Shown here one piece after another: positions 7,790 to 60,973 of a stretch of DNA of 64,000 bases (positions are counted from its first letter, which is position 1; each line of letters begins with the position of its first letter). The notes beneath the pieces were generated by a model that did not search any database, was not told where the DNA came from, and saw only the letters and a program-made list of their open reading frames with translations. Made by a program: the position numbers and the translations under genes. The stretch is taken from IMG/VR virus record IMGVR_UViG_3300035698_018317, positions 161,285 to 225,284 of that record, one strand, 5' to 3'.

Positions 7790-8254
7790 CTACATCATTG
7801 GTGGGGGAGGGGCCGCAGCGGGGGGCATTCCCGGCTGTTGAGGCGGCTGTTGTTGTGGTTGAATTGGTGGTGGAGGTTGTTGTGGTTGTGGGGGTTGTTG
7901 TTGCTGTTGCATAGAATCTACCATATTTGGGTCGGCTTCGCCAGCTTTTTCTTCTGGATTTACAGGTTTCCCTGAAAGTATTTTTTCTATTACTTCCCAA
8001 ACGTTAGTAGCTTTGAATTCTGCGGCTGGTTCTGGTTGTCCCGGTTGTGGTTGACCACCCATCGGGTCCATGCCGCCCATTGGAGGAGCACCGCCACCCA
8101 TCGGGGGAGCACCACCACCCATTGGAGGAGCACCACCCATTGGAGGGGCACCACCCATTGGGTCCATTCCACCGCCGCCCATTGGAGGAGCACCGCCGCC
8201 CATTGGAGGAGCTTGCGGGTCTTGTTCTATGATAAAATCTTCGAAAGTTTTCAT
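7790..8254 (-). CDS. Pro/Gly/Met/Gln-rich low-complexity protein with CTS-like N-terminus (MKTFEDFIIE)
   Basis: GGAPPM repeats; N-terminal motif shared with about ten other genes; CTATATATA motif upstream. Confidence 0.75.
   Translation of the reverse strand: MKTFEDFIIEQDPQAPPMGGGAPPMGGGGMDPMGGAPPMGGAPPMGGGAPPMGGGAPPMGGMDPMGGQPQPGQPEPAAEFKATNVWEVIEKILSGKPVNPEEKAGEADPNMVDSMQQQQQPPQPQQPPPPIQPQQQPPQQPGMPPAAAPPPPMM
8040..8220. repeat. coding tandem repeats (GGAPPM/GGMDPM units, ~18-21 bp)
   Basis: Repeated ggagcacc(a/g)cc(a/g)cccat units inside the low-complexity ORF. Confidence 0.85.
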
Positions 8255-8398
8255 TACAATATATATAGTGATTCTAGTTCACAAAGAAAAACAAGTTTTT
8301 TCTTGTTTTTTCATTAAAAATATTCTATATTACTTACAGTGGTAGATACGCTACCGAAGATTGCAGCAAAAGGCTGCGTAGAAGAAGGAAAACAAAAT

Positions 8399-9328
8399 AT
8401 GTACGAAGAAAAAATTGCTAGTGCTATTGCGCTCATAGCGGAACACAACGAAGCCATTGGAAAAGATGACGATGGCAATCCAAATCCGGGGTATATAGAC
8501 CCCACAGATTTCACAACATGCTTAAAGGCATCAGGTGGAACTTCCGAAGAAAGACTTAAAGGGTTCTCTTATGAGGATATTTTAACCTGTCTTCCAAAAG
8601 TCAAAACACCATCTGGTATAGAGGCATTTCCTCGTGTTGTGGCTAAAGAAATTGCAAAAATATTTCGAGGTGGCGAAAAAGTTGAAAATCGTCCTATTAG
8701 TCGCAGAAGAACAGAACGTATGACTTTAAGGGAATTAGTCGAGAGTTTCGACCCAGAAGAACACACATCTGCAATTGCCAAAAGACTTTATGAAATTTCC
8801 AACGGGCAAGCTTTTATTGTATTTGAAAATGGTCGTGTTGTAGATGTAGACACCACCATGAAGCTACTGTTGGAAATTAAACAAGGTCATAAAGGAAGGG
8901 CAAACATAAAGGTAAATGACAAAATAAAAAGAGTCCATAAAATAGGACAATTACCTGATAATTATGCTGTTGAAAACCCATTATACCCACGCCGTCCATT
9001 GCGACCCGACGGAACTTGTGACCAAACAGGACGCTCATGGGAAGGAGTTACTTTAGAAATAATGCAACTTGTTAGACTTGCAATAACAACAGGAGAATTA
9101 AAAGTAAACTTAGAAATGGCCCATAATACATTGGATATGGCTATGGGTGAAGGTGCCGAAGAAAAGCTTAGAGATAGATATAGAGATGCTTCTGTTCTGT
9201 TCGATGAAAAACCAGATGATAGACCTAAATTGAAAATTTCATTAAACGGAAACTCTAAAGGAAATCCTTTAAAAGAAGGTCGCCCCGTAAGATGGAAAAA
9301 AGAAGGCAATGCGTATCGTTCACTATAA
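8399..9328 (+). CDS. hypothetical protein
   Basis: Long ORF; start placed at MYEEK after an AGAAGGA SD-like site. Confidence 0.75.
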   Translation: MYEEKIASAIALIAEHNEAIGKDDDGNPNPGYIDPTDFTTCLKASGGTSEERLKGFSYEDILTCLPKVKTPSGIEAFPRVVAKEIAKIFRGGEKVENRPISRRRTERMTLRELVESFDPEEHTSAIAKRLYEISNGQAFIVFENGRVVDVDTTMKLLLEIKQGHKGRANIKVNDKIKRVHKIGQLPDNYAVENPLYPRRPLRPDGTCDQTGRSWEGVTLEIMQLVRLAITTGELKVNLEMAHNTLDMAMGEGAEEKLRDRYRDASVLFDEKPDDRPKLKISLNGNSKGNPLKEGRPVRWKKEGNAYRSL

Positions 9329-9346
9329 AACAATAAAGGATAAAAA

Positions 9347-10141
9347 ATGTCAAAAGAAAAAAAGAAATTATATGTAGCAATTGTGTTGGATAAGTCTGGT
9401 TCTATGTGGAAAACAAGAGAAGCTGCCATTATAGGATACAATGAACAAGTTCAACAGTTAAAAATAAATGAAGATGATTTAGAAACAGAAGTTTGTTTGG
9501 TAACGTTTAATGGACAAGTTTTTGAACATCTATGGTGCGTCCCTACTGATGACTTGACAGAAATAGGTGATGATGATTATAAACCATTGGGTGCCACGGC
9601 TCTGCGAGATGCCATGGGATATACAATCAAAAAACTCATGGACACTACAGACTACGAAGATGAAAATAATGCCTATCTCGTTATTGCCATTTCCGATGGT
9701 GATACCATGAGTGATAAACATTACAGTGTTGGTGCTTTAAAAGAATTAATCGAAGGCTGTCAAGCAACGAAACAATGGACGTTCACCCACATGGGATGTA
9801 ATGAGAATTATCTGAAAGAAATGGCAAAAGAAACCGGAATTCCAGTGGCTAATTATGCTGCATGGGATAATACATCTCTTGATTCTACGAGGGGTGGAAT
9901 GAAGAGAGCGACCGCAAGAACACAACTATATCGTAAAAGCATCGCTGGAGGGCAATGTTGTTCATCAAACTTTATGTCAGATGTGGACAACCAAGTTGCT
10001 GATTTCACGAAAGTAGATGATATAGATTTAATCGCAAAGAATGTTGATGTTGCATCAATCCCAAAACCCTCAACGACAACTAAAGCTAGAACAGTTTTCT
10101 GCGAAGCTAAAGCTGTTGAGTGGCCCCAAGAAGATAATTAA
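9347..10141 (+). CDS. von Willebrand factor type A (vWA) domain protein
   Basis: MIDAS motif VLDKSGSM, VTFN, G.TALRDA, VIAISDG. Confidence 0.88.
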   Translation: MSKEKKKLYVAIVLDKSGSMWKTREAAIIGYNEQVQQLKINEDDLETEVCLVTFNGQVFEHLWCVPTDDLTEIGDDDYKPLGATALRDAMGYTIKKLMDTTDYEDENNAYLVIAISDGDTMSDKHYSVGALKELIEGCQATKQWTFTHMGCNENYLKEMAKETGIPVANYAAWDNTSLDSTRGGMKRATARTQLYRKSIAGGQCCSSNFMSDVDNQVADFTKVDDIDLIAKNVDVASIPKPSTTTKARTVFCEAKAVEWPQEDN

Positions 10142-10157
10142 GATGTATAGATAAAGA

Positions 10158-10361: not shown

Positions 10362-10374
10362 TCCGATTTTTATG

Positions 10375-10403: not shown

Positions 10404-10426
10404 ACGTTAGAAGTAGGAAAAGAAAC

Positions 10427-11838: not shown

Positions 11839-12060
11839 TTAAGATTCAAATTCTTTTTGAATCATCTCCATTACTTTGTTAAAATCTTTTTCACTAGTTG
11901 TTTTGGTTTGAACGTATTCGGCAGCTTTATCTATAGTGAGACCGCCTGTGCGAATGCTATTTACCATCTTACTAGCTAATTTATTTAAATTTAATTCACC
12001 ATAACCCCCAACAAGTGGTGGCATTAATCTTGATTCTAACCATGTGTTAAAAGTTTTCAT
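11839..12060 (-). CDS. small protein with CTS-like N-terminus (MKTFNTWLES), antisense within tRNA array
   Basis: Fills the gap between two tRNA genes exactly; shared N-terminal motif; ATAGATA upstream. Confidence 0.65.
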   Translation of the reverse strand: MKTFNTWLESRLMPPLVGGYGELNLNKLASKMVNSIRTGGLTIDKAAEYVQTKTTSEKDFNKVMEMIQKEFES

Positions 12061-12073
12061 AATGTATCTATTC

Positions 12074-12158
12074 GCCCTAGTGACGGAATTGGCAGACGTG
12101 CTGGCCTTAAAAGCCGGTGTCAATATATGGCGTGCAGGTTCGAGTCCTGTCTAGGGTA
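12074..12158 (+). tRNA. trnL: tRNA-Leu(TAA)
   Basis: GCCCTAG/CTAGGGT, CTGGC-CTTAAAA-GCCGG, long variable arm. Confidence 0.92.
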
Positions 12159-13037: not shown

Positions 13038-13065
13038 TTATCAAACTAAAACAATATATAATGTT

Positions 13066-14052
13066 ATGGGTGCTCAAACTACAGAGGGAACAGGATTTGG
13101 TTCTGCTGAAGGTCCAATTAGAGGACTAGGCGATGTAACCAAGATTCTAAAAAAGAATGCTGATGGGTCAGCATTCTCAAGTGAAGATAGCGTCATTAGA
13201 GAAACTAGTGGCGGTGATGCTGTAGATATACCTATAGACCCAATAGATGGCTTAGATGCTGAAAATGTTCAAGAAGCTTTAGAAGAACTCCAAGAAGAAG
13301 TTGAGGCTGGTGGGATTCCACCATTAGCGGAAAACATCACTGTTATACCAGTTGGAGATTTAACATCAACAAATGTACAAGATGCGTTAGAAGAACATCA
13401 GGATGACATAGATAATATCGAATCAGATGTTGCTATAAATGCATTTGATATTTTTACTAATGCCACAAATATTGATGGAAAAATAGATAAGATTTCTGCT
13501 CCGGTTACTGGGAATTTCCCATTAATTACGGCGACTGGTGAGGTGTCTAATTCTACGGTGGGTCCAGATGATTATTATACTCAGGGAGAAATAGACGCTT
13601 TAGAATACAGTCACTCTAGCTTATTAGACCTTCAAGGTGGAAGTGCTTCAGAAAGATACCATTTAACAAATGCACAACATACCAATTTAACTGATGGCGA
13701 CCCCACATTTGATACGATTGTTTTAAATGATATTATCCTTAATGACAGCCAAGCCACAACAAAAGAATATGTAGATTCTATAGTAGCTGGTTCTGGTGCT
13801 TGGTTAGACCCTGTAATTGACTTCAGTACAGAAGCAGCAGCCACAGAAACTACTGGCTTTCGCTATATTGCCTCTGCGGATGGTTCGACTTGGACAAAAG
13901 ATAATATTTATGAATATAATGGTGCATCGTGGGATGAAACAGTAATAGCTTCAGGAAATACTACTTTTGTAGAAGATTTAGGATTAGTCTACTTATTCAC
14001 TGGAACTAGTTGGGTTGATACTGGTGGAGTGTTCCAAATCATAATGACTTAG
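13066..14052 (+). CDS. virion fibre/structural protein, N-terminal part (frameshifted into next ORF)
   Basis: Acidic, Gly/Thr-rich; TNVQDALEE and LQGG..ERYHLT motifs; reading continues in the -1 frame past 14040. Confidence 0.7.
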   Translation: MGAQTTEGTGFGSAEGPIRGLGDVTKILKKNADGSAFSSEDSVIRETSGGDAVDIPIDPIDGLDAENVQEALEELQEEVEAGGIPPLAENITVIPVGDLTSTNVQDALEEHQDDIDNIESDVAINAFDIFTNATNIDGKIDKISAPVTGNFPLITATGEVSNSTVGPDDYYTQGEIDALEYSHSSLLDLQGGSASERYHLTNAQHTNLTDGDPTFDTIVLNDIILNDSQATTKEYVDSIVAGSGAWLDPVIDFSTEAAATETTGFRYIASADGSTWTKDNIYEYNGASWDETVIASGNTTFVEDLGLVYLFTGTSWVDTGGVFQIIMT

Positions 14053-17624: not shown

Positions 17625-17657
17625 AAAATTATATATACAGTTTGTGCTCAAAAACAA

Positions 17658-22643: not shown

Positions 22644-22659
22644 TAAATTAATTGCTTAG

Positions 22660-22690
22660 AAAAAGGTGTCACAATTTGTGGCACCTTTTT
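22660..22690 (+). terminator. intrinsic terminator
   Basis: AAAAAGGTGTCAC-AATTT-GTGGCACCTTTTT. Confidence 0.75.
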
Positions 22691-22705
22691 CTATATTATA
22701 GTAAC

Positions 22706-24040
22706 ATGTTTATTCCAGATAAATTTCACTTCATATACCTTAATGAAGGAGCGGGAGCAAAACCGTTTAGTCTAGTTCATTATGTTTCTATTAAATCAGC
22801 AATAGAGGTCAACAATCCTGATTCTGTAACCTTATATTATTCTAAAGAGCCTGATTCTTTCTGGTGGGATAAAATCAAAGGTCAAGTAAATTTAGAAAAA
22901 GTAGTACCGCCTAATAGTGTTTTTGGTAGACCAATAACTCATGTGGCTCACAAAGCTGATGTATTAAGACTTGAAAAACTAATTAAGCATGGGGGGATTT
23001 ATTTAGATATAGATATAGTTTGTTTAAAACCATTTAAAGATTTATTGAATAACAAAGTAGTTCTTGGTAGAGAAAAAAAGCAACAGATTTGTAATGGCGT
23101 CATTATGGCCAAAAAAAACTCCGCATTTCTTAAGGAATGGTATCAACTTTACAGGAGTTTTGATGACACACAATGGTCAACACATTCAGGTTATCTTTCA
23201 ACTCGATTAGCTCAATTCAACCCCTCAGTACGGTTAGAACCACCAGAGTCATTCTTTATTCCAAGTTATCGTAGACTTCCTGCCTTATTCAAAAGAAATC
23301 AAAACTTTCCACAAGCATACTGTTATCATCTATGGGAAAAATTGTCTTGGAATTTCATAAAACAATTAACAGTCTCAAAGATTAGAAAAGAAGATACAAC
23401 ATTTAATGTGGTGGCAAGAAAATATTTATCTGATATAGTAATTCCACCATCGGAGGATAAGTCTAAGCATAAACATAAAGTAATATGGAGAAAATATCCT
23501 ATATTTATACATACGCCGAAAACAGCAGGCACTTCTATGGCGAAGATTTTGAAGAATAATAAGATTCGTCATTTCTGGCACAAGCCTGCTAAAGAATTAT
23601 TAAGAGGCAATCCTTTTTCTTTCGCATTCGTAAGAAATCCTTACGATAGATTTGTAAGTGCTTATCAATTTGTAAAAGATGGAATAGTTGACCCTGTACA
23701 GAATAAAAGTGTTTTTAAAATCATAAAGAAATGTGGTGATTTTGAAACGTTCTGTATGGATTTTAAAAATTATCCAGTTTGTACAAACCATGTAATTTTT
23801 GAACCACAATACAAATTCCTATGTGATAAAGAAAAAATTATAGTTGATTTTATAGGCCGATATGAGAATCTACATGAAGATTGGTTTAAGTTGCTTAAAA
23901 AGCTTAAAATAAAAGATACTCCACTTCCTATGTTAAGAAAGAGTAAAAGAACCTCAGATTATATGTCGTACTATACAGAAGATGCCAAACAAGCTATAGG
24001 TGAATATTATAAAAAGGATTTCGAAATATTTGGATATTAA
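22706..24040 (+). CDS. DXD glycosyltransferase (GT32-like) fused to sulfotransferase family 2 domain
   Basis: ADVLRL..L...GGIYLDID; C-terminal IFIHTPKTAGTS, FVRNPYDRFVSAY, DFIGRYENL. Confidence 0.85.
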   Translation: MFIPDKFHFIYLNEGAGAKPFSLVHYVSIKSAIEVNNPDSVTLYYSKEPDSFWWDKIKGQVNLEKVVPPNSVFGRPITHVAHKADVLRLEKLIKHGGIYLDIDIVCLKPFKDLLNNKVVLGREKKQQICNGVIMAKKNSAFLKEWYQLYRSFDDTQWSTHSGYLSTRLAQFNPSVRLEPPESFFIPSYRRLPALFKRNQNFPQAYCYHLWEKLSWNFIKQLTVSKIRKEDTTFNVVARKYLSDIVIPPSEDKSKHKHKVIWRKYPIFIHTPKTAGTSMAKILKNNKIRHFWHKPAKELLRGNPFSFAFVRNPYDRFVSAYQFVKDGIVDPVQNKSVFKIIKKCGDFETFCMDFKNYPVCTNHVIFEPQYKFLCDKEKIIVDFIGRYENLHEDWFKLLKKLKIKDTPLPMLRKSKRTSDYMSYYTEDAKQAIGEYYKKDFEIFGY

Positions 24041-33308: not shown

Positions 33309-33344
33309 GGCACCATTTCTAAGTTTCCATGCCTAAATACTGTA

Positions 33345-34538
33345 ATGGCGGTTGAATTCAAAATATGGTTAGAGAATAGTGACGTTGTTTCTTTTCTAGA
33401 AGGAATCAAGCGTTCTGTGTTAAGTTCTCTTAAAGCAGAAGATGGTAAAGTATCATTTAGTTTTCCTTCTTTTGAGTCACAACCATTAACTCTCGCTGCC
33501 CATCGTAAATTAAAAGGAAACATTCTTTCTGAAGGATACGGGCAACAAGGCAAATATGGCAAAGGAACTTTAGCTTTTAAAGCTGTTCAAAATCAAGTAT
33601 TTCCAGATTTAAATCAACAACAAGCTGATGTGTTCCAAAAAAGAATGCAACGTGGTCCCAAGGAAGTTGGAAAAGAAATGGGCCTTATGTTTGAGTTAGA
33701 AGTTTATTTATACTTACTCGAAGTAGCTAACCTCCAACCTAGAGGGGAAAGAGGTCCGGGTTGGGTAAGAACACAAAATATAGTTCAATACGAAACAATA
33801 AAAAAGAAAACAAGTAAAACTCTTGCTGACCAACTTGTGATGCTAGTAAGGTATCACGCTAAAGAATTAGCCACAAGTATGCTTAAACGCACACAACAGA
33901 TGCTTAAGGATTGTAAGGTAAGTTATATTGTGTTTAGTGGCGGTGAGTTCTTTAAAACACATGGAACGCATAGACAAACTGCTGATATGGTTTTAGGATG
34001 CAGTGAAAAAAGTGTGGGTCACTCTCTCAAATTCACAAGTGAAACAATGCCAACAATCGCTAATCTGTGGAATAAACAATCTTTCATTATGTTTGGTGGA
34101 AAAAAGATAGCCACGTTTTCAGACGAATTAGGGAAATATGAAGAAGGCAGTAAAGAAGAATCAAAATTTGTATTAGATAATCTGGAAGAATTAATTAAGG
34201 ATTTAGTTAATAAACCAGTTAAGTTAAATTATGTAATTAACAAACTTCTTCTTGGTGCCGAGGAAACAGGAGAAATTTCCAATACTGTTCCTGCATTTAG
34301 AAATTATATTAAAGGAAGAGGTGAAGCTGGTTTCGCCCCTGCAATTAGAAAAAACTTTAGAGTTTCTTATCAAGATGGTAACAAAATTCTCATTAAGCCA
34401 AATTCTGAAATTGGAGTAAGAAGAACAAAAAGTTATATAAACATATACATAACAGCACCCGACTCAAACACTCCTACCATAATCAAAGTTGAAGCAAAAA
34501 GAGGGCAAATTATAGTAAAAATGAGCGGGTTGATTTAA
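33345..34538 (+). CDS. putative restriction-endonuclease-like protein with CTS-like N-terminus (MAVEFKIWLE)
   Basis: G.MFELEV...TADMVL...HSLK resembles the PD-(D/E)XK core; CTAAATA upstream. Confidence 0.55.
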   Translation: MAVEFKIWLENSDVVSFLEGIKRSVLSSLKAEDGKVSFSFPSFESQPLTLAAHRKLKGNILSEGYGQQGKYGKGTLAFKAVQNQVFPDLNQQQADVFQKRMQRGPKEVGKEMGLMFELEVYLYLLEVANLQPRGERGPGWVRTQNIVQYETIKKKTSKTLADQLVMLVRYHAKELATSMLKRTQQMLKDCKVSYIVFSGGEFFKTHGTHRQTADMVLGCSEKSVGHSLKFTSETMPTIANLWNKQSFIMFGGKKIATFSDELGKYEEGSKEESKFVLDNLEELIKDLVNKPVKLNYVINKLLLGAEETGEISNTVPAFRNYIKGRGEAGFAPAIRKNFRVSYQDGNKILIKPNSEIGVRRTKSYINIYITAPDSNTPTIIKVEAKRGQIIVKMSGLI

Positions 34539-34552
34539 ACCCGCTCATTTTT
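34517..34552. terminator. bidirectional terminator between convergent genes
   Basis: AAAAATGAGCGGGTT-GATTT-AAACCCGCTCATTTTT. Confidence 0.85.
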
Positions 34553-35231
34553 ACTTTTTCCTTTCCAAAATCTCTTCTGGAGTAAGATTAGGTTGCCATT
34601 GTCTGATTTTTTTTCTGAGAACTGACAGAGGGACACCATGTTCGTTGCCACTAACTCCATACTTATCAGCCATACCTTGATGATGCCCAGCTAAGAACCT
34701 TGCAAAATCTTCTAATTGTGTTCCATATTGTCCTTTATCAGACAACATATGAGCATGGTCTTGCCACCAAGGAGAAGTTGGTTCTTGTATGTAAGTCACA
34801 TATCCAGCTTTTTGAGCAGCAATAACGTAATTTTCCATTTCCCATGCTTGGACATTAGTGTTGTCAATAATGATAGGATGGACATTTTCAGATAGAGCCT
34901 TTTTAAATCTCCTGAAGTTCCAATCATGAGCGGCCCGTAATTTATCTCCACTCCAATTTTCTCTATAAGTTTCTGGCTCTAATTCTGCATAGTATGCTTC
35001 GTCAATTTCTTCACCACGTTCAAGTTTATCTTGTTTTTCTTTGATAATCTCTAATATGAAAAAATCATCCGAGCCAAAGATATGACTTGCAGGGTCTAAA
35101 TTTTCTCCGTATTGTTTTAAAACTTCTTTAGCGGTATAACTTTTACCACTTCCTGAAATACCTCTCATGATAACACAGGTTTTTTGTTCTTTACGGTCTA
35201 CGTAATTTACGAATCTCATTCCATCACTCAT
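34551..35231 (-). CDS. P-loop kinase (AAA_33 / N4BP2-type polynucleotide kinase-like)
   Basis: MRGISGSGKS, IIIDNTN, WE..NY, QEP..PW. Confidence 0.78.
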   Translation of the reverse strand: MSDGMRFVNYVDRKEQKTCVIMRGISGSGKSYTAKEVLKQYGENLDPASHIFGSDDFFILEIIKEKQDKLERGEEIDEAYYAELEPETYRENWSGDKLRAAHDWNFRRFKKALSENVHPIIIDNTNVQAWEMENYVIAAQKAGYVTYIQEPTSPWWQDHAHMLSDKGQYGTQLEDFARFLAGHHQGMADKYGVSGNEHGVPLSVLRKKIRQWQPNLTPEEILERKK

Positions 35232-37266: not shown

Positions 37267-37662
37267 ATGAAAACATTTACAAAATTTATATTAGAACAAG
37301 ACGAGCAAATTGCTATTGATGAATTCCCGTTTGAACTGGAAGATATTATATCTTGTGAAACACAGCATTTAGGCCCATGTACTACTCCAGAAGCAATTGC
37401 CCATATAAAACTGGCACAAAAGACAGCTAAAATTTTAGGAGTTGTCAAAGCTTTTGGATACGGTAGTGATTTTAAAAAATCTACTCCTGATGATTTCATT
37501 TATGAGGTGACAGTGGAATATATGGAAAAGGCTCTTGACGAAATTCCAAATTCAAGATTAATACAAAGACCATATTTTGCCAATCCGGGTGAGCGTACTT
37601 ATAAAAACAGAATGTTAATTGGTGTTAATCAAGAAGGTAAATCCTCAGTGTTTATGAATTAA
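37267..37662 (+). CDS. hypothetical protein with CTS-like N-terminus (MKTFTKFILE)
   Basis: Shared motif; ATAAATA at 37253-59. Confidence 0.72.
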   Translation: MKTFTKFILEQDEQIAIDEFPFELEDIISCETQHLGPCTTPEAIAHIKLAQKTAKILGVVKAFGYGSDFKKSTPDDFIYEVTVEYMEKALDEIPNSRLIQRPYFANPGERTYKNRMLIGVNQEGKSSVFMN

Positions 37663-38012
37663 ACTTTGCTTCTGCCAATTATTTCTACTTGAGAGGGATT
37701 AAAGACAAAACCATCGAAGTGGTCCCCTCTAGGAAGAATCGCTCCATCATAACCTTGTTGTTCAAGTTGGTCGAGTACAAGTTGATTATATTCTTTCCAA
37801 CCAGCAGGATTTTGTAAATTAACTTTTAGTTCAAGAATATATCCTGACCCTTGTGCCCCTGCTTCTCCAGATTCAATAGATGTTTTATCAGATGTAAACC
37901 AAATTAAACCTTGAGTTGCTTTTTTTAAATTAAATGTCTTAAACCTTTTATCTGTACCGTGATATACGGTCTGTGTGATGACAGATGATTCAAGGTATTG
38001 TTTGAACTCCAT
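37659..38012 (-). CDS. ADP-ribosyltransferase-like protein with CTS-like N-terminus (MEFKQYLE)
   Basis: VYHGT..F..F...G.IWFTSD...V.L.NP...L...GYDG...VF.P.Q ART-type pattern. Confidence 0.7.
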   Translation of the reverse strand: MEFKQYLESSVITQTVYHGTDKRFKTFNLKKATQGLIWFTSDKTSIESGEAGAQGSGYILELKVNLQNPAGWKEYNQLVLDQLEQQGYDGAILPRGDHFDGFVFNPSQVEIIGRSKV

Positions 38013-38014
38013 GT

Positions 38015-38290
38015 TTAAATACCATTAATTCCACTTAAAGCATCGGCTAATTCTTTAATCTCAATGCCGTTCTTAATTCTATCGTGTATCTCTGGGTCAG
38101 CAGCAGAATTCACTGGTCCCCATTGAAGTAAATCCCCTATTAATTCAGGCGTAAATTCATTTGTATTCATAGATAGAAGTTGCTCATCATCGTCAATTCC
38201 CGTCTTTGATTTCAAAAATTCTAGCAGCCCAGTCTGTATTGCAGCCTGCTCTGAATTACCCTGTTCTAACCATGTCTTAAATTTCATCAT
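38015..38290 (-). CDS. small protein with CTS-like N-terminus (MMKFKTWLE)
   Basis: Shared motif; CTAAATA upstream. Confidence 0.7.
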   Translation of the reverse strand: MMKFKTWLEQGNSEQAAIQTGLLEFLKSKTGIDDDEQLLSMNTNEFTPELIGDLLQWGPVNSAADPEIHDRIKNGIEIKELADALSGINGI

Positions 38291-38298
38291 AACAATTC

Positions 38299-38317
38299 TA
38301 TTTAGTGAGCCTAAATA
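38299..38317. promoter_or_regulatory. back-to-back putative late promoters
   Basis: TATTTAG-TGAGC-CTAAATA inverted pair, each a few nt upstream of a divergent ATG. Confidence 0.6.
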
Positions 38318-38322
38318 AGATA

Positions 38323-39105
38323 ATGAATAAAAGTTTTAAATCTTGGATATTCAATGAGAAAGCTGATATATTTGGTTTTGATAAGAAAATAGAACCAATC
38401 AAATGGAAAAAGCTTCAAGACCCCTCTGACAACTTACGAGTAGACGAGGTTCTCAAAGAAATCACAAAAAGTGATTTAGGAATAAAGTGTGGTCGTCAAC
38501 TATGGTCTAACATTGTTGAATGGGGTTATTTTACAGGTGCTATCAAAGTAGAATCTCATCCTGCTTCCTTTTCTTTAGAAGTAAAAAGAAAAGTTGAAGA
38601 TTTAGAAGGTAAAACTGTATGGGTCACTAAGCGAGTTGTGTCTATTCTTGAAACTAAAAAAGGACAAGAAGCAGAAATAGCAAGCGGGATGATAGATGAA
38701 TGCCGAAAAATTGATGAAGAAATGGTTGATATGCCATCAAGAGATTTCACCAAAATTGAAAATCTAGTATCAAAGATATCCTATCATATGAGGCTTAAAG
38801 CCCAAGAAAAGTTCATCTTCAAAGGTGTAAAGAAGATGAAAGAAAATAGTTATATAACAAATTGGCAAATGGCTGGAATGGGTGTAGAAGCACCATCCCA
38901 AAGAAGAGTAGAACAATTCACATTAAATACGACATATTATCCTGAAAGGGGTGTGATTCGATGTTGGGCCTCTGATATAGGTTCAGAATCAGGTGGTGAC
39001 TTTGCGTGGAAAATACGACCAAGTGAATGGGATTTATATTTTGTTCCAACACAGTCTATTGATGAAATTGTTAAAGCAAATGTAGTAATGTTCGAGATGT
39101 ATTAA
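38323..39105 (+). CDS. hypothetical protein with CTS-like N-terminus (MNKSFKSWIFNE)
   Basis: Long ORF; shared motif. Confidence 0.72.
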   Translation: MNKSFKSWIFNEKADIFGFDKKIEPIKWKKLQDPSDNLRVDEVLKEITKSDLGIKCGRQLWSNIVEWGYFTGAIKVESHPASFSLEVKRKVEDLEGKTVWVTKRVVSILETKKGQEAEIASGMIDECRKIDEEMVDMPSRDFTKIENLVSKISYHMRLKAQEKFIFKGVKKMKENSYITNWQMAGMGVEAPSQRRVEQFTLNTTYYPERGVIRCWASDIGSESGGDFAWKIRPSEWDLYFVPTQSIDEIVKANVVMFEMY

Positions 39106-44524: not shown

Positions 44525-44584
44525 ATTTATTTTCAATTTTTACAAGGGGTTGTTTCTTCATCTTGATTTTGTTATAATTTTTGT

Positions 44585-45892
44585 ATGTTCGAATTTGAAT
44601 CCGCTTTAAATAAAATTTGGGGCCAAACGCTCTTTGCTGAGTTCCAACCAGATGTCGGAGATTTCACAGGTGATAAACCTACATATCTCAATATACATTC
44701 GGATACTCTTAATTTGCGGATTCCATTTCCATCTGACCCTAAAAGGCTTAAGAAGCGTCGAGCACAAATCTTAACTTATATTTCTGGCAAAGATAAGCCA
44801 AATGTAATTATTGGGTGGAATCTTAAAGAATTATTCAGTTACATACTGGGAAAAACAACAGTCCCGCTTCAACTCAATTCTAAAATATATGATTTAAAGA
44901 TTCTGGAATGGTATTTGGGAATTGAAAAGAGTGTTCCAACATCCTTAAAAGAAGCACAAAATAGACTTGCTAAAGTAGTACAACATTCTTCTTGGGAAAA
45001 GCTTCAAAAAGTGTACGAAGGTATATATATACCTTTGATAACACGAGTCGTCCCGGCTATGGAGACTATCGGTGTTAACCACCGGGGACTCAAAAAACGG
45101 CTTCATAGTCATTATGAAATAAACGGCCAAGTCAATGGCCGAATGAAATGTTCAAAAATTCTTCAAGATGGTTTCAATCCACATTCAATAGGTCTTGAAG
45201 ATAGACGAGCGTTACGAGCGGTAGGTTTTGACCGAACGTTTATGTATTTGGATTATAAGCACATGGAGGTTTCAGTTCTCCAATGGTTGAGTGGCGATGA
45301 TGTTTTGGGAAATATATTAGATTCGGGGAAAGATATTTATGAGGCAGTATGGACTATTCTTACAACATTAGAAAGCACACCTAAGTTTCGTGAAAAATGT
45401 AAAGGATTGTTTCTTCCCGTAGTTTATGGACAAGGTGTTGCTTCTGTGGCTAAAGCTAGTCAAATACCAGAAGAAACAGCAAGAAGATTGGTGAGCAGAA
45501 TCTATAATCGTTTACCAATGGCAATGAATTGGGTTCAAGGACAACAAAATTTATTAATAGACGGAATAGGAACTGATGTACACGGAAGATGTAGAGAATT
45601 TGACCAAGCGTATAAGGTGCGGAATTTTATTGTCCAATCCCCCGCAGCATTGTTATGTTTGCACAAGCTGGTCGAACTGTATGACGCAATGAAAGGATTG
45701 GCACAGGTTGCCTTTCATATTCATGATGGTTATGTTTTATATGTGCCGAAAGAAGATAGCATGAAAGTAGCAAAACGAGCTAAAGAAGTTTTGGAATCAG
45801 AGGACAGCTTTTTCCAAGGTCTGAGGTTAAAGGTTTCATGCAAAATAGGTGATAATTTAGACGAATTAAAAGAAATGAGGATAGATGAATGA
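44585..45892 (+). CDS. compact family A DNA polymerase
   Basis: GRM, motif A LDYKHMEV, motif B R..CK...LPVVYGQG, NFIVQSPAA, motif C IHDG. Confidence 0.85.
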   Translation: MFEFESALNKIWGQTLFAEFQPDVGDFTGDKPTYLNIHSDTLNLRIPFPSDPKRLKKRRAQILTYISGKDKPNVIIGWNLKELFSYILGKTTVPLQLNSKIYDLKILEWYLGIEKSVPTSLKEAQNRLAKVVQHSSWEKLQKVYEGIYIPLITRVVPAMETIGVNHRGLKKRLHSHYEINGQVNGRMKCSKILQDGFNPHSIGLEDRRALRAVGFDRTFMYLDYKHMEVSVLQWLSGDDVLGNILDSGKDIYEAVWTILTTLESTPKFREKCKGLFLPVVYGQGVASVAKASQIPEETARRLVSRIYNRLPMAMNWVQGQQNLLIDGIGTDVHGRCREFDQAYKVRNFIVQSPAALLCLHKLVELYDAMKGLAQVAFHIHDGYVLYVPKEDSMKVAKRAKEVLESEDSFFQGLRLKVSCKIGDNLDELKEMRIDE

Positions 45893-53856: not shown

Positions 53857-54891
53857 ATGGATTCACAAGAAGTATTAACGTTTGATTCGTGTCGCAGGTT
53901 TGGTGCGGAGATTGAAATCTGTTCCTTTGACCATCGTGACTTCAAAAACAACCCCTTAGAGGGTAACGAAATGCCTCAAGGCATTGAAGAAGTGGCCCAT
54001 ACCTTGATGGAGGGCTTAAATGCCCAAGTCATTGTCAATAAATGGCACCATACGCATAATAATGAATCGTGGGTGGTTAAACCTGATTCATCTGCGGGTA
54101 TTGAGGTTTGCTCTCCAGTCATTAAAGGGTGGCGAGGCATCAGGGATGTATGTACTGCTGTCGAGTTGATGAAAACAAATCCTGAAGTGGCTGTAGATGG
54201 AAAATGTGGTTTTCATATTCATGTTGAAGTGGAAGATTTTGACACCAGACTTTTAGGCAAAGCTCTTGCTTGGTGGGTAAAATGTGAATCTGTGTTTATG
54301 GATTCTGTTCCATCTTGCAGGAAAAGAAATAAATATTGCGAACAAGTGGGATTGAGTCCAGTATTCCAACATGACACAAGAATTGATGGAGAGTGGCTTG
54401 TTAATTTACTGGGTGAGATGAAGTATTATACAATTAATACTTATCACCTATGTAAAGGTAAAAGAAAGACTATTGAGTTCCGAATCATCGAAGGCAAAGG
54501 TTGTCTTGATTCATATCTTATAAAAAATTGGATGAGGTTACTCATTCATTTTGTAGAGATGGCTAAAAAAGCACCGTGGCCTAAGAGATATAAAGAAGAC
54601 AATCCTTGGACTGGATATTTGTGGTTAGATTTTCGTGATGTGATGAAATTTCTAGGATTTGACGGGCCGTTGTCTAAAGGGTTGGAAGAAACAAGAAACT
54701 GGTTTATAGCTAGAATACAGAAAAATATACGTGAGAATTTATCTGGTTGTTTGTCTGAATCTGCCCGAGGCATTTGTGCCCAACAGGTTGAAGAATTCAT
54801 AGCTCAACACGGACTTGGTGATGACCTTTCAAATTGGTTGGTGCCGGAGAATTTGGAAGAGGCGTTATATTCAAAAGAAACAGCTTTATAA
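53857..54891 (+). CDS. putative amidoligase (COOH-NH2 ligase type 2)
   Basis: FGAEIE, W.VKPDSS, EVCSPV, CGFHIHV, TIEFR. Confidence 0.82.
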   Translation: MDSQEVLTFDSCRRFGAEIEICSFDHRDFKNNPLEGNEMPQGIEEVAHTLMEGLNAQVIVNKWHHTHNNESWVVKPDSSAGIEVCSPVIKGWRGIRDVCTAVELMKTNPEVAVDGKCGFHIHVEVEDFDTRLLGKALAWWVKCESVFMDSVPSCRKRNKYCEQVGLSPVFQHDTRIDGEWLVNLLGEMKYYTINTYHLCKGKRKTIEFRIIEGKGCLDSYLIKNWMRLLIHFVEMAKKAPWPKRYKEDNPWTGYLWLDFRDVMKFLGFDGPLSKGLEETRNWFIARIQKNIRENLSGCLSESARGICAQQVEEFIAQHGLGDDLSNWLVPENLEEALYSKETAL

Positions 54892-56027: not shown

Positions 56028-56273
56028 ATGAATGATTCGAATTTAAGAGAGTATACAAAAACTTTATCTGATACGGATGTTTCTTTTTTATACATTCGTT
56101 TTCAACAGCGTTTAGGCGGTGACACAGAAGAAATTTGTCAAGTTTTAGCTAGAAGTAGAGAAGTAGATAGATGGTTAACTTCAGCAAAAAATCATGATGA
56201 ATGGGATGTGATGTTTGAACAGGTGGCACGAATAATTTCAGAATCACACAAAAGCAGGAAATTAGACCGTTAG
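56028..56273 (+). CDS. hypothetical protein
   Basis: SD GAGGA. Confidence 0.65.
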   Translation: MNDSNLREYTKTLSDTDVSFLYIRFQQRLGGDTEEICQVLARSREVDRWLTSAKNHDEWDVMFEQVARIISESHKSRKLDR

Positions 56274-57379
56274 ACGAAGATGTTATTTGGTGAGCTTATT
56301 AAGTTCACATCTTCAAGTTTTTCTTCATTGGCTAGATTTTCAAGCGTGAAGTCGGACGCCTTATAAATTCCATCTTTTACAACGAGAGCAAATCCACTGG
56401 GTTTGCTCTCGTTTGTTTTTCTAGTATTTAATACGTATTCGTAAGTGAGAACCGGACATGGTATTGGCTCTAGGTTGATAAGTAATAAAGCAATCCATTT
56501 GTCTTTGTATTGAAAAATATGTTTGTCTTTTTTGAATACTATAGGATTTTTAGTGCTTGTAAATATAAAATGGTCTATATCGTTACTTTCCCAGTTTATT
56601 AAGTTTTCATTTCTTTGGATGGTGTCTTTTGGGTCGATGACACTTACATCTGCTTTGGCTTTAAATACATCATTCCCTATTTTAATAGGAATATAATGAT
56701 TTTCTATTGGTAAAGAAAGAGCAAGCATATGTTCTTCTGGTTCTGGAGGTGGCCCATTTTCACAGCATTGGCCTGTCAAAGAAACAGCATCTAAAAAACA
56801 TCCTTGGTCCGAGGGATTCGTAGGTTTAATTGTTACCATAACTGTAGATGCATTTGGCGTAAATACTATTTCTTTAGTCTTCCATGAGCCAGTTATAGAG
56901 TCGGTTATATAAGTTGTCAATGTTCCAGTAGTTGTATTGGTAATTTCGACTTCAAAATCTTCATAATCTGTTGGGCTTTGATGTTCGTTTCTAGCTTGAT
57001 AAGCGAAGCTTAAAGTATGTTGTGTGCCACCATCGGAGATGGTAACAGTCTGGGTGACACCCCAACCTTCGGATGCTTGGGCTTGTAGTTCTACGAAGTA
57101 AGTGCCTTCATAAGCAGGAGTGCTCATGCCTGCTCCATTCCAAAACTCTATGTTCCAATTACCAGTTGGAGTGGTTGACTCTATCGCACAATCCCAACCA
57201 TCAACACTTCCTTGGTCTACCCATTCAAAATTCCCAGTTATTGACCCTTGTTCAAAACCCCCGTTTATTAACAATTCCCCACAGTCGCAGCATTCACATA
57301 GCATGGTCCAGCATGGGTCTTGAAGTAAACATGCTTTGATATCGTCTGCAATTCCTTGTCCATCGGTAATAAGTGGCAT
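56270..57379 (-). CDS. virion protein with galactose-binding-like (DUF642-like) jelly-roll domain
   Basis: LLINGGFE...W...VELQ...QTVT...LSFAY.AR; ATAAATA upstream. Confidence 0.65.
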   Translation of the reverse strand: MPLITDGQGIADDIKACLLQDPCWTMLCECCDCGELLINGGFEQGSITGNFEWVDQGSVDGWDCAIESTTPTGNWNIEFWNGAGMSTPAYEGTYFVELQAQASEGWGVTQTVTISDGGTQHTLSFAYQARNEHQSPTDYEDFEVEITNTTTGTLTTYITDSITGSWKTKEIVFTPNASTVMVTIKPTNPSDQGCFLDAVSLTGQCCENGPPPEPEEHMLALSLPIENHYIPIKIGNDVFKAKADVSVIDPKDTIQRNENLINWESNDIDHFIFTSTKNPIVFKKDKHIFQYKDKWIALLLINLEPIPCPVLTYEYVLNTRKTNESKPSGFALVVKDGIYKASDFTLENLANEEKLEDVNLISSPNNIFV

Positions 57380-57386
57380 ACCTTAT

Positions 57387-57737
57387 TTATGCCTGATTAC
57401 TCTCATCTCCAAAAAAACCATCTGGGTATTCTATTTTAACGCTTCCGTCCCCTTTTGTTTTTTTACCTTTTTCATCTTCTACCCACCATTTTACTTGCTG
57501 AACTTCAGGTTTAAATGATTCATTTTTTCCTTCTTCATTCATGGCGGTAAATTGGTCTTCAAAGAAACAGGTATCGTTTTTGTCTACGGGGATATGAATT
57601 TTTTCTCCATCGTGTAGAACAATAACCCCACATAGATTTTCTTTTGGATTAAATAATCTGCACTTCCCACATAGAGGTTTTACTTTTTCTTTATCTTTAC
57701 TGAAGATTTCTTTTATTTTTATTATTTTCTTTTGCAT
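57387..57737 (-). CDS. hypothetical protein
   Basis: CGKC...C...C cluster. Confidence 0.6.
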   Translation of the reverse strand: MQKKIIKIKEIFSKDKEKVKPLCGKCRLFNPKENLCGVIVLHDGEKIHIPVDKNDTCFFEDQFTAMNEEGKNESFKPEVQQVKWWVEDEKGKKTKGDGSVKIEYPDGFFGDESNQA

Positions 57738-58251: not shown

Positions 58252-58252
58252 T

Positions 58253-58741: not shown

Positions 58742-58742
58742 T

Positions 58743-58925
58743 ATGCCAACATATTCATATCGTTGCAAAGCCTGTAAGAAAGATTTTGATATTTTTCATT
58801 CGATGAAAGATAAACCAAAAAAGAAATGTCCTAAATGCGGCAAGATGAAATTGGCTCGTGTTATCACAGCGCCGCCAGCCGTTATCTTTAAAGGACAAGG
58901 ATGGACACCTAAATATCATGATTAA
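58743..58925 (+). CDS. FmdB-family zinc-ribbon protein
   Basis: MPTYSYRCKAC...F...H.M...CPKCG...IFKGQGW. Confidence 0.88.
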   Translation: MPTYSYRCKACKKDFDIFHSMKDKPKKKCPKCGKMKLARVITAPPAVIFKGQGWTPKYHD

Positions 58926-59334
58926 AGGATGGAACACAGCTATCGTTCGTAAAAAGCCTAGTTTGCCTATGCAATGGCTTGATAATAATGGTTATTTAAA
59001 AGGTAGACAATTAGATTATGGATGTGGCCGTGGGTTTGATGCGGAGTACTATGAGATAGACCGATATGACCCACACTGGTTCCCAGACAGTCCTGTTGGG
59101 CTTTACGACACTATTACATGTAATTATGTTTTAAATGTGGTCACGAAAAAAAAAGAAAGAGCCATTATAGAACATATAAAAACCTTACTTACTGGGACAG
59201 CATTTTTTACTGTTCGTCGTGATATAAAGAAGAGTCAAAAAGGAAGAGGGGTAATTCAGAGGTTAGTGAAATTAGATTTACCTTTGGTATATGAAAAAAA
59301 AGGAGCGTTTGCTATCTATTCTTTTGATTCCTGA
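58918..59334 (+). CDS. class I SAM-dependent methyltransferase
   Basis: LDYGCGRGFD, YDP, YDTITCNYVLNV. Confidence 0.82.
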   Translation: MIKGWNTAIVRKKPSLPMQWLDNNGYLKGRQLDYGCGRGFDAEYYEIDRYDPHWFPDSPVGLYDTITCNYVLNVVTKKKERAIIEHIKTLLTGTAFFTVRRDIKKSQKGRGVIQRLVKLDLPLVYEKKGAFAIYSFDS

Positions 59335-59980
59335 CTTTTTTCTTAAGTAGGTCGATTCCTTTTTCGGTTATGACAACAAATTTCCACCCTCTATGCTTAC
59401 AAGCTTTGTTAGCTGCACGCCATTTATTTTGGTTCACTTCTAAGAAAGTTTGGTTGGCTGGTTTGATTTCCCAAACTTCAGTCTTGCCATCTATAAATTT
59501 CACAATTAAATCTGGAATATATTTGTGTTCTTTTCCTTTGTGTAAATAGGCAATTTTGAAAGGTTCGACACTAAAAGCATTGACTTCAACATCTACATCT
59601 AAACATTCATAAATTGTTTGTTCATATCCTGAACGATAATGAAGAGGTTTTTTCATTTTTTGGGATTGAAAATATCCTTCTCTAAATTTTGGTTTACGAG
59701 TTTTTTTCTTTTTCTTTGGTGCTATATCACGCCACACAATAGATTTCATCATCCCTGTTTTAGGAATGTTTTCGCTAGGGTGTTTAACTTTGAAATGTGC
59801 CCTCATATCTCTTACAGGGGCACCACAACGGCTTAACGGACATATAAGGTAGTCTCTACCCTCTTCATGTTCTTCAAAGATATGTTCTTTGAATTCTTTA
59901 AATGTTTCAAATTTCACACCACACACGAAGCATTGGTATTTGCGTTTATCTTTATTTGGAATGTCGAATGGGAGGGCCAT
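59312..59980 (-). CDS. TnsA-like / T4 gp4-like head completion nuclease with C2H2 fingers
   Basis: YRSGYE, EPF.I.Y, YIPDL, WEIKP, KW.AA...C...GWKF..ITE. Confidence 0.8.
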   Translation of the reverse strand: MALPFDIPNKDKRKYQCFVCGVKFETFKEFKEHIFEEHEEGRDYLICPLSRCGAPVRDMRAHFKVKHPSENIPKTGMMKSIVWRDIAPKKKKKTRKPKFREGYFQSQKMKKPLHYRSGYEQTIYECLDVDVEVNAFSVEPFKIAYLHKGKEHKYIPDLIVKFIDGKTEVWEIKPANQTFLEVNQNKWRAANKACKHRGWKFVVITEKGIDLLKKKVRNQKNR

Positions 59981-60327
59981 TACATATCTTTAAATGCATC
60001 TTCTCTAGAAATAGGTTTTATTTTTTCTAAATTAGATTGAGAAAATATCTTTTGTTCTTTATGGTTTTTTGATAATTTTTTAATATTAACGCCAACGAAT
60101 GTGGATTGTTTAGCCCATGCAATATCTTCATCTTCAGGTGATTTCATTCGTGCAAAAGCTAATCTGGTATCTTCTGTGCCACCGTATGGCTCTCCATCGA
60201 AGGTAAAGAAGAAAGAAATATTCTCTTCATCGGCCAACTTTTCTAATTCGTCTTTTTCAACGTTCTCGTCCCATATATCCAATAGTTCACGGAAGGATGA
60301 GAAATATGGTGATGTTTTCTTACTCAT
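59980..60327 (-). CDS. hypothetical protein
   Basis: ORF; GTATATA upstream. Confidence 0.6.
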   Translation of the reverse strand: MSKKTSPYFSSFRELLDIWDENVEKDELEKLADEENISFFFTFDGEPYGGTEDTRLAFARMKSPEDEDIAWAKQSTFVGVNIKKLSKNHKEQKIFSQSNLEKIKPISREDAFKDM

Positions 60328-60356
60328 ACAGGTATATACTATGGAAAAGGGATTAT

Positions 60357-60782
60357 ATGCAATTATCGTTTAAAAAATTTATAGAATTAGAGAAAGTTGA
60401 ACCAGATTTTCTGGGTAAAACCGCAGATGAATTGGCTATAGACCCTAAGAGTTTTAAAGCGGCACCACAATGGCTCGGAGCAGCACAGTTTGGTAGTTAT
60501 TACTATAATGGGATGACATATACCATTAAAAACTTCCTTCCTGAAGACCCACAATCTGAGGATGAAATAACTGGCGCTGTGTTAACAGCGATGCCAGCGG
60601 TAGATACTCAACGTGCGTATTATGCAGATAAAAAAGGTCGTACTATTCGTTCTCCGAATAATGACCCAGAAGAAGGTAGAGAAGTCACTGTAGATAGAAA
60701 AACCTTAAACGACATGATGACACAAGGGATGAACCAGCCACAACAACAGCAAGCGGGTGGTATGCCCGGAGGAATGATGTAA
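60357..60782 (+). CDS. hypothetical protein with CTS-like N-terminus (MQLSFKKFIELE) and Q/G/M tail
   Basis: Shared motif; ends QPQQQQAGGMPGGMM. Confidence 0.68.
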   Translation: MQLSFKKFIELEKVEPDFLGKTADELAIDPKSFKAAPQWLGAAQFGSYYYNGMTYTIKNFLPEDPQSEDEITGAVLTAMPAVDTQRAYYADKKGRTIRSPNNDPEEGREVTVDRKTLNDMMTQGMNQPQQQQAGGMPGGMM

Positions 60783-60973
60783 TGGAAACACCTAAAGAAA
60801 ATACATTTACAAGTTTTAAGCAATTTATAAAATTGCAGGAAGTAGGAACTAGTACAGGCGATGTAGCAGCTTTTAAGAGGATGACCATACCGGGACAGAT
60901 TAAGAGACAATTTCCTCCTTGGGGAGATGAAGACCCATTCTTCAAGAAGAAAAAAAAGAAATTGCTTGGATAG
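60782..60973 (+). CDS. small protein with FKQFIKLQE motif
   Basis: Translationally coupled to previous gene; shared motif. Confidence 0.6.
   Translation: METPKENTFTSFKQFIKLQEVGTSTGDVAAFKRMTIPGQIKRQFPPWGDEDPFFKKKKKKLLG

Follow-up and report, generated by a model that had tools for sequence, protein, structure and literature searches.

Here we describe a short N-terminal tag carried by otherwise unrelated genes in a 64,000-nt stretch of viral DNA (the window), which forms the last 64 kb of the 225,284-bp IMG/VR contig IMGVR_UViG_3300035698_018317 (positions 161,285–225,284 of the contig, called G000 in genome comparisons). The tag places two aromatic residues, a Leu or Ile and a Glu as they are placed in the capsid-targeting sequence (CTS) of the bacteriophage T4 internal proteins, and it probably represents the same type of targeting system in a greatly expanded form. 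Tagged genes occur throughout the contig and in related genomes, and most of those in the window follow an A/T-rich element located a few nucleotides before the start codon. Reads containing the contig DNA come from salt-lake metagenomes, and the phage is uncultivated. The contig has a G+C content of ~36% and a CheckV completeness of 44%; it is a megaphage fragment, with an expected full genome of about 500 kb.

The N-terminal tag and the T4 capsid-targeting sequence

The strict form of the tag was defined as M-x(0-4)-[FY]-x-x-[FWY]-[LI]-x(0-2)-E. Genes were called over the whole contig with a simple codon-usage caller, and the first ATG of each open reading frame (ORF) was taken as the start, a choice made blind to avoid bias. 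Sixteen of the 304 resulting N-termini match the pattern, compared with a mean of 0.49 and a maximum of 3 in 1000 shuffles, and one match was found among 1369 internal methionines. The core motif occurs 40 times in 69,463 residues, with more than half of the occurrences located in the first ~10 residues of a protein. When starts are chosen with the motif in mind, the contig contains about 22–26 good members, nine to ten of which lie in the window (Table 1). Tagged genes make up ~7–8% of the genes in the contig and ~4% in each of two relatives. Some are grouped in small clusters (window 37267–39105; genome 105141–107851, 133522–134313 and 155680–156035).

An initial annotation of the window, made by reading the sequence, had listed about ten genes with CTS-like N-termini and had proposed a comparison with shuffled N-termini, which the motif clearly exceeds. 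All ten N-termini are present as they were read, nine of them at the extreme N-terminus and the tenth, in the gene starting at 60782, at residues 11–20; membership of this last gene is doubtful. The count itself was too low, since the signal extends over the whole genome.

Table 1. Tagged genes and upstream elements in the window (window coordinates; SD, Shine-Dalgarno site)
Positions	Strand	Feature	Remarks
7790–8254	−	Tagged gene, 154 aa, MKTFEDFIIE	Remainder is low-complexity P/G/M/Q repeats
8260–8267	−	TATATATA promoter-like element	5–7 nt before ATG at 8254; no SD
11839–12060	−	Tagged gene, 73 aa, MKTFNTWLES	ATG 12060 has tag and upstream element; ORF reaches further upstream to TTG at 12123
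12065–12070	−	TAGATA element	4 nt before ATG of the 12060 gene
13055–13060	+	TATATA element	5 nt before untagged 328-aa gene 13066–14052 (MGAQTTEG...), which has a paralogue elsewhere in the genome
17067–17624	−	Tagged gene, 185 aa, MNFKNWLIQE	Element before ATG; no SD
17630–17637	−	TATATATA element	5–7 nt before ATG of the 17624 gene
33334–33339	+	(C)TAAATA element	5 nt before ATG of the 33345 gene
33345–34538	+	Tagged gene, 397 aa, MAVEFKIWLE	Tag kept in homologues down to 37% identity
37254–37259	+	(A)TAAATA element	7 nt before ATG of the 37267 gene
37267–37662	+	Tagged gene, 131 aa, MKTFTKFILE	Of all the tags, most similar to T4 IPII/IPIII MKTYQEFIAE
37659–38012	−	Tagged gene, 117 aa, MEFKQYLE	ART-PolyVal ADP-ribosyltransferase (Pfam PF18760, E 1.3e-9, 39.4 bits, cut-off 31.2); no element of its own
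38015–38290	−	Tagged gene, 91 aa, MMKFKTWLE	Probably co-transcribed with the 38012 gene
38291–38322		32-bp divergent control region	Two back-to-back CTAAATA, 38299–38304 (−) and 38312–38317 (+)
38323–39105	+	Tagged gene, 260 aa, MNKSFKSWIFNE	LR756511.1 homologue (28% identity) begins MKSFASWFNE
57384–57389	−	TAAATA element	4 nt before untagged 369-aa gene 56270–57379
60357–60782	+	Tagged gene, 141 aa, MQLSFKKFIELE	Element 18 nt upstream and weak SD; alternative ATG 60297
60782–60973	+	Atypical member, 63 aa, SFKQFIKLQE at residues 11–20	GGAGG SD; no element

The consensus of the tag is M-x(1-3)-F-x-x-[W/F/Y]-[L/I]-x(0-3)-E. The F/Y, W/F/Y and L/I positions, which are set by the search pattern itself, are filled in all 23 members examined; Trp, the rarest residue, occupies the second aromatic position in 13 of them, and a Glu lies within three residues of the Leu or Ile in 19. 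The codons used vary synonymously, with TTT and TTC for Phe, TTA, CTA and CTT for Leu, ATA, ATT and ATC for Ile, and variation at Lys as well. This synonymous variation, together with the prevalence of Trp at position 7 and the Glu that follows, indicates that the tag is conserved at the protein level. An all-against-all blastp comparison of 35 candidates from which the first 14 residues had been removed gave no pair at E < 0.01. As the annotation had proposed, and as far as sequence comparison can tell, the tagged proteins have nothing in common beyond their first ~12 residues.

In T4, the ten N-terminal residues of IPIII are enough for encapsidation; residues 4 and 7 are the main targeting determinants, residues 8 and 10 serve in processing, and the gp21 protease cleaves after the Glu of an L/I-x-E sequence (PMC9026906). 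IPII and IPIII begin MKTYQEFIAE and IPI begins MKTFKEF in the T4 gene sequences. The tag described here has the same length of ~10 residues and the same location at the extreme N-terminus, with aromatic residues at positions 4 and 7, Leu or Ile at 8 and Glu at about 10, so that the likeness to the CTS that the annotation had noted is found at the positions that count in T4. The tag of the gene at 37267 departs from that of T4 at non-critical positions only. In both cases the tag is carried by otherwise unrelated proteins. The two differ in that three to four genes are tagged in T4 and 20–40 per genome here, in the preference for Trp at position 7 with a Glu often directly after the Leu (W-L-E), and in the distance between the Met and the first aromatic residue, which varies from one to four residues. 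The setting also differs, in that our contig derives from a ~500-kb megaphage whose capsid protein is only ~28% identical to gp23.

The same pipeline was applied to the whole genomes of LR756511.1, G003, T4, Xoo-sp13 and phiKZ. Nucleotide searches of the window against the phage collection gave no match, whereas a protein-level search with the capsid protein identified one close relative, the uncultured 595-kb phage LR756511.1 (82% identity), followed by Xanthomonas phage Xoo-sp13 (32%). The largest huge-phage genomes have all been assigned to the Mahaphage clade, and Bacteroidetes are the predicted hosts of five genomes of this clade that exceed 634 kb (PMC7162821). The size of LR756511.1 falls within the range of these largest genomes, and this phage likely belongs to the Mahaphage clade. 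Its N-termini include 15 strict matches (1.3 expected from shuffles) and ~40 motif-aware members. The 572-kb genome G003, which is complete with terminal repeats and encodes a Gp23 protein scoring 283 bits, has 23 strict matches (1.3 expected) and ~38 motif-aware members. T4 (169 kb), the positive control, has four matches where 0.35 are expected, namely IPII, IPIII, gp61.1 and one that probably arose by chance, and Xoo-sp13 (309 kb) has two (0.23 expected; four motif-aware). In phiKZ (280 kb, 36.8% G+C) the strict pattern gave no match, with 0.32 expected, and the relaxed pattern described below gave one, probably by chance.

Five genuine tagged proteins have homologues in LR756511.1, at 28–54% identity, and the tag is retained in all five. 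For the pair with a DUF5661 domain, an extra zinc-ribbon region is located between the tag and the shared domain, and the tag thus behaves as a separate module. The 397-aa protein encoded at 33345 has no homologue found in LR756511.1; its close homologues elsewhere keep EFKIWLE, and one that is 37% identical begins MDFREWITD. An 88%-identical homologue of this protein (P0023) is encoded on a 163,640-bp contig labelled as a Candidatus Scalindua metagenome-assembled genome at NCBI, which is probably a mis-binned megaphage fragment.

A scan of IMG/VR for the exact pattern ATG-MKTFxxW[L/F]E returned 88 stretches, with most matches at ORF starts. The size implied by CheckV is at least 430 kb for 33 of the 49 source records, and 18 of the 49, most being small fragments, carry a Peptidase_S77 protease. 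The 704 kb of DNA flanking the matches contains 46 more tagged ORFs, compared with 1.9 expected, and the G+C content of the source stretches ranges from ~30% to 55%. Taken together, the record sizes, the protease and the flanking tags identify the tag as characteristic of a clade of megaphages whose heads are T4-like. Among the papers returned by our searches on capsid targeting, the prohead protease and huge phages, none describes the tag in huge phages.

Several candidates were rejected. A relaxed pattern, in which V, F or M was allowed at position 8 along with up to five leading residues, gave false positives and was left out of the core count; an AAA ATPase and the P-loop kinase at window 34551–35231 are of this kind. 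The N-terminus of the primase (G000 65928, LR756511.1 543819, G003 495397) is conserved for other reasons, and the LR756511.1 homologue of the protein beginning MKRCILYYIYIME at genome 32176 lacks the tag. In the IMG/VR scan, a 12-codon ORF with the sequence MKTFNNWFEILS and identical upstream DNA recurs in L076, L077, L090, L116, L118, L129 and L133 and was set aside as noise of the pattern scan; this conserved stretch, either non-coding or mobile, only mimics the tag, and two records containing it, including that of L076, are classed as proviruses.

Tagged proteins and head-assembly genes

Relative to the rest of the proteome, the tagged proteins have shorter chains, a more hydrophilic composition and more disorder-promoting residues, and several have poly-Lys tails or Pro/Gly/Gln repeats. 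These features would suit proteins that lie among the packed DNA and leave through the tail. Some members consist almost wholly of low-complexity sequence (PPMGG, poly-Gln) or end in poly-Lys (window 7790–8254; genome 92076–92213, 139990–140139 and 107851–108039), and these look like DNA-associated filler rather than enzymes. Searches of the ten window proteins against PHROGs returned no family apart from one marginal match, and Pfam was informative for a single protein, the ADP-ribosyltransferase at 37659–38012; the 154-aa protein at 7790–8254 matched neither collection. A protein-language-model (Atlas) comparison gave nothing for the 260-aa protein at 38323 and a weak likeness to restriction-endonuclease-like viral clusters for the 397-aa protein, which we treat as a weak lead. 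The AlphaFold2 model of the latter, built from seven sequences, has a pLDDT of 49 and was not used for a fold search.

The ADP-ribosyltransferase is the best-defined of the window proteins. Residues Y17, H18, G19 and T20 are invariant in an alignment of 21 sequences (the protein and 20 homologues). Domains of the ART-PolyVal type are regarded as passengers that enter recipient cells together with phage or conjugative DNA. The domain (PF18760) is otherwise a module of giant multi-domain polyvalent proteins, whereas here it forms a small stand-alone tagged protein of 117 residues in the window and part of a 239-aa protein in G003, where the tag lies ~50 residues ahead of the domain. An ADP-ribosyltransferase among the tagged proteins is a further point of likeness to T4, and we hypothesize that a head-carried enzyme of this type would parallel Alt, a packaged T4 enzyme that also has a CTS.

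Domains recognized in other tagged proteins include an HTH DNA-binding fold and DUF5661 in this contig, a HAD_SAK_1 RNA-repair phosphatase, a tRNA-ligase-type cyclic phosphodiesterase and a Peptidase C39-like cysteine protease in LR756511.1, and a CCA-adding/poly(A) polymerase-family enzyme in G003. Two proteins of our contig with Val at position 8 of the tag resemble such enzymes by eye only: the product of the gene at genome 29524 is HAD-like, and a 518-aa protein at genome 31096 resembles the CCA-adding/poly(A) polymerases. As a hypothesis, tRNA-repair enzymes loaded in advance would make sense against host defences that cut tRNA. Few members have a recognizable domain, and an anti-host or anti-defence effector role is therefore a guess for most of them.

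The contig encodes a T4-like head module composed of a portal protein (phrog_213), a Peptidase_S77 prohead protease, a 308-aa protein in the scaffold position and a Gp23-family capsid protein; the genes that accompany the T4 internal proteins thus have counterparts here in a protease of the gp21 family, a capsid protein of the gp23 type and a portal. The protease (genome 87508–88230; PF03420, E 1.6e-26) aligns with T4 gp21 and conserves both catalytic residues, His85 and Ser140, and its N-terminus, MELLLE, ends in LLE where that of T4, MNEPQLLIE, ends in LIE. In the capsid protein (~290 bits), ~55 residues that include L-x-E sites precede the Pfam domain, as expected if this segment is a propeptide.

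The gene between the protease and the capsid protein (genome 88230–89156) encodes an acidic protein with 16 [LI]-x-E sites. It ranks first of 304 for the density of these sites (5.2 per 100 residues, with a median of 1.2), a value that stems in part from its Glu content of 16%. This protein is a likely candidate for a gp22-like scaffold or core protein that would be cut up by a protease of T4-like specificity.

Just downstream of the portal gene, the head module also encodes a predicted lipoprotein of 269 residues that has a trypsin-like peptidase domain (genome 84335–85144), with TAGATA 5 nt before its ATG; two proteases in one head module are unusual. Two genes upstream of the prohead protease, a very acidic 100-aa protein beginning MKRFTDYFIEQEE is encoded on the minus strand (genome 85153–85455), in what we take to be roughly the place of the T4 prohead core proteins gp67 and gp68. 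LR756511.1 has, besides its head-module protease, a second and weaker Peptidase_S77 match (242621–242989, minus strand; a 304-aa frame scoring 34.8 bits), and a diverged protease paralogue has likewise been reported for SPN3US-like giant phages (PMC5694885).

Elements upstream of the tagged genes

In seven of the ten window genes, TAAATA, TATATA or TAGATA ends 4–8 nt before the ATG and no SD is found, which bears out the annotation's statement for most genes; the genes starting at 38012, 60357 and 60782 depart from it in the ways listed in Table 1. Five to seven tagged genes of the contig are SD-led. With blind starts, the element precedes nine of the 16 tagged genes and 35 of the 288 others in the contig (p = 7e-5), and in LR756511.1 the corresponding figures are 10 of 15 tagged genes and 80 of 1005 others (p = 4e-8). 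The observed forms are CTAAATA, ATAAATA, TATATA and TAGATA, and the consensus is [C/T]TA[A/T/G]ATA.

The distance (d) between element and ATG is sharply distributed. The contig has 13 elements at d = 5, where 0.5 per position are expected, LR756511.1 has 23 at d = 4 and 29 at d = 5 (0.9 expected), and G003 has 22 and 33 at these distances; phiKZ, used as a negative control, has none at d = 4–7. Genes at the peak distance almost never have an SD. A trough at 9–14 nt is followed by a weaker cluster at 15–19 nt, in which most genes do have one. This pattern, either no leader or a leader that just accommodates an SD, is what an element that sets the transcription start predicts. Tight coupling to the preceding gene is seen in 15% of the genes that have the element, as compared with 44–47% otherwise, and divergent junctions are commoner among them.

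In the divergent spacer at 38291–38322, a palindrome-like pair, CTATTTAG and CTAAATA, serves two tagged genes on opposite strands and the spacer is too short for −35 boxes. The ADP-ribosyltransferase gene starts 2 nt past the stop codon of the gene at 38015–38290 and is therefore probably co-transcribed with it. The element also precedes untagged genes, among them those of a baseplate wedge subunit, a virion structural protein, a head-tail adaptor and a tail sheath stabilizer, and its position before virion structural genes suggests late, near-leaderless transcripts. The genes at 13066, 27922 and 57379, which the annotation had described as fibre-like and preceded by the same motif, lie where it placed them; searches of PHROGs and Pfam gave nothing above threshold in favour of the label.

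T4 late promoters, TATAAATA, are read by the sigma factor gp55 with gp33 and the gp45 clamp. The element resembles them as an A/T-rich sequence of 6–8 bp that leaves no room for a −35 box in the divergent pair and stands before virion structural genes in a phage that encodes a small candidate for a gp55-like sigma factor. This candidate is a 173-aa ORF (genome 148150–148671) identified by profile search (Sigma70_r2 and phrog_234 'late sigma transcription factor', E 4e-6); T4 gp55 used as a protein query gave no match in the contig or in LR756511.1. The annotation's T4-like late promoter is thus supported as to the genes served and altered as to form: the consensus is related to but different from TATAAATA, and the element lies 4–5 nt from the ATG without an SD, implying leaderless or nearly leaderless mRNA. 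The T4 ip genes, by contrast, have an SD-type AAAGGAAA before the ATG.

We consider a late promoter the best reading of the element, and a reasonably probable one. Most tagged genes would then be transcribed from a minimal promoter with a −10 element only, probably read by the gp55-like factor, and the mRNA leader would be absent or 1–3 nt long. Leaderless or nearly leaderless mRNA is plausible, if somewhat less assured than the promoter itself. As a point against, the gap of 4–5 nt falls slightly short of the spacing that normally separates a −10 element from the start of transcription, and the element could instead lie inside the 5′ untranslated region. The geometry suggests that this tailed phage has late genes of a leaderless class, which bears on the takeover of translation. 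Ten genes, including that of a DNA polymerase fragment (ATG 44585; window 44570–44590), have TATAAT 3–9 nt before the ATG and no SD. Their similar spacing suggests that short or absent leaders may extend beyond the late genes, to transcripts from sigma-70-type promoters.

Proposed capsid targeting, its alternatives and other genes of the window

We propose that the tag would fold into a short amphipathic helix, one face of which carries F4, W7 and L8, and that this helix would dock each newly synthesized protein on the scaffolding core while the prohead assembles. The gp21-family serine protease would then cut after the Glu and free the mature protein inside the head, where it would remain with the packaged DNA and enter the next host cell with it. 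In this account, which we hold to be the likelier one, the T4 capsid-targeting system would operate in a distantly related lineage, where the consensus has shifted, tagged genes are about ten times as numerous and the architecture of gene starts is different. The annotation's suggestion of internal head cargo finds support in the tag positions, in the protease, capsid and portal genes and in the conservation of the tag in relatives, while the ADP-ribosyltransferase is a weaker example than it looks. A broader claim, that a clade of ~500–600-kb megaphages (probably Mahaphage) loads dozens of unrelated proteins, ~4–8% of the proteome and including ADP-ribosyltransferases, tRNA/RNA-repair enzymes and proteases, through one T4-like tag and from leaderless late mRNAs, we advance tentatively as a possibility.

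Huge phages have hundreds of genes annotated without a function, and this clade has no cultured member. If the tag acts as proposed, ten residues would sort genes, without experiment, into those delivered with the DNA and those made after entry. The injected 'first-strike' proteome of uncultivated giant phages could be read from metagenomic sequence, with a direct pointer to candidate counter-defence and host-takeover proteins. The T4 mechanism would also be ancient, conserved between lineages with capsid proteins less than 30% identical and serving ~10 times as many cargo genes here, and the tag might be used to direct packaging in engineered phages other than T4.

The heads of giant phages are known to contain ~50 different proteins (PMC5694885). 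In phiKZ, 201phi2-1 and SPN3US, the many proteins (~50) inside a large head and the diverged gp21-like protease that cuts them after Glu (PMC5694885, PMC9026906) resemble what is proposed for our phage. Unlike the tagged proteins, theirs mostly have propeptides of more than 100 residues, cut at S/A-x-E, and no short common tag; phiKZ shows neither an instance of the tag motif nor a peak in the distance from element to ATG.

Several observations weigh against capsid targeting. In the many members with W-L-E, Trp rather than Leu or Ile occupies P3 of the presumed cleavage site, which in T4 is L/I-x-E, and among the 40 LR756511.1 members only 17 have a Glu within three residues. The sequence FKxW[FL] is intrinsic to the N-terminal region of the ART-PolyVal family and is internal in some homologues, so that the window ADP-ribosyltransferase, taken alone, is an ambiguous case and the G003 protein a cleaner one. 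Some tagged proteins are not usual head cargo, namely the HAD phosphatase, the CCA-adding enzyme, the cyclic phosphodiesterase and the small HTH protein. Homologues of gp22, gp67 and gp68 were not found by blastp, so that the docking partner is a positional candidate only. Finally, T4 gp61.1 (NC_000866 18966–19130), a 54-aa hypothetical protein from the early primase region, begins MKTFKEFIKE and has, to our knowledge, no head role; a match to the tag alone is thus no proof of packaging, and gp61.1 is either unrecognized head cargo or a warning about inference from the tag only.

These points also bear on the strongest competing explanation, that the tag is an N-terminal protein signal for another process, such as delivery to a different phage structure or compartment, recognition by a chaperone or timed degradation, with a likeness to T4 that is convergent or partial. 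The soluble tRNA/RNA-repair enzymes and the DNA-binding HTH protein do not require a place in the virion, head cargo would account for a large share of the genes (4–8%), and both gp61.1 and the lack of a scaffold partner identifiable by homology would fit such a signal. We nevertheless regard it as unlikely. The conserved positions coincide exactly with the T4 determinants of targeting and cleavage, with the Glu following the hydrophobic pair in 19 of 23 members; the tag co-occurs with gp21-family proteases in the IMG/VR records and is absent from phiKZ; the upstream element is common to tagged and virion structural genes; and giant phage heads are known to hold comparably many proteins.

Recombination at shared gene starts has been proposed for the hypervariable internal-protein loci of T-even phages. 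Promoter and tag might likewise form a portable cassette for swapping genes at their starts, which would add to capsid targeting rather than replace it. The small clusters of tagged genes would agree with such exchange, as would their slightly faster turnover, with homologues in LR756511.1 for 5 of 21 tagged genes and for 109 of 282 others. However, the shared stretch is conserved as protein and not as DNA, and at the nucleotide level it is too short and degenerate for homologous recombination, which makes the cassette improbable.

A still weaker case can be made for an mRNA-level role, in which the conserved start would aid ribosomes on leaderless transcripts and the peptide would be a by-product of nucleotide constraints. 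Most tagged genes do lack an SD and have the element 4–8 nt before the ATG, and their tag codons are mostly A/T-rich. Against this, synonymous codons vary freely while the rare TGG (Trp) dominates position 7, some tagged genes are SD-led, and structural genes whose transcripts are presumed leaderless (MPTLNT..., MANNTL..., MAKNRL..., MGATTT...) do not carry the motif. The peptide also recurs in relatives across the whole range of G+C content, and we give this explanation very little weight. Chance, compositional bias or descent from one paralogous family can be set aside, since the A/T-rich genome favours F, K, I, N and Y but the shuffled N-termini yield far fewer matches than observed, phiKZ with the same G+C content has none, and the members are dissimilar beyond the tag.

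The tagged genes of the window are interspersed among genes of replication and recombination. The window also encodes a ribonucleotide reductase, a gp46/47-like SbcCD, a DNA polymerase fragment, a DnaB-type helicase, a single-stranded DNA-binding protein and a UvsX-like recombinase. The polymerase ORF (435 aa; window 44585–45892) aligns solely with the C-terminal part (916–1233 of 1445) of the PHROG polymerase profile, and the polymerase may be split or its gene interrupted. Proteins with a galactose-3-O-sulfotransferase-like C-terminal domain and of the amidoligase-like type are encoded at window 22652–24040 and 53857–54891; these are auxiliary functions with no relation to the tag.

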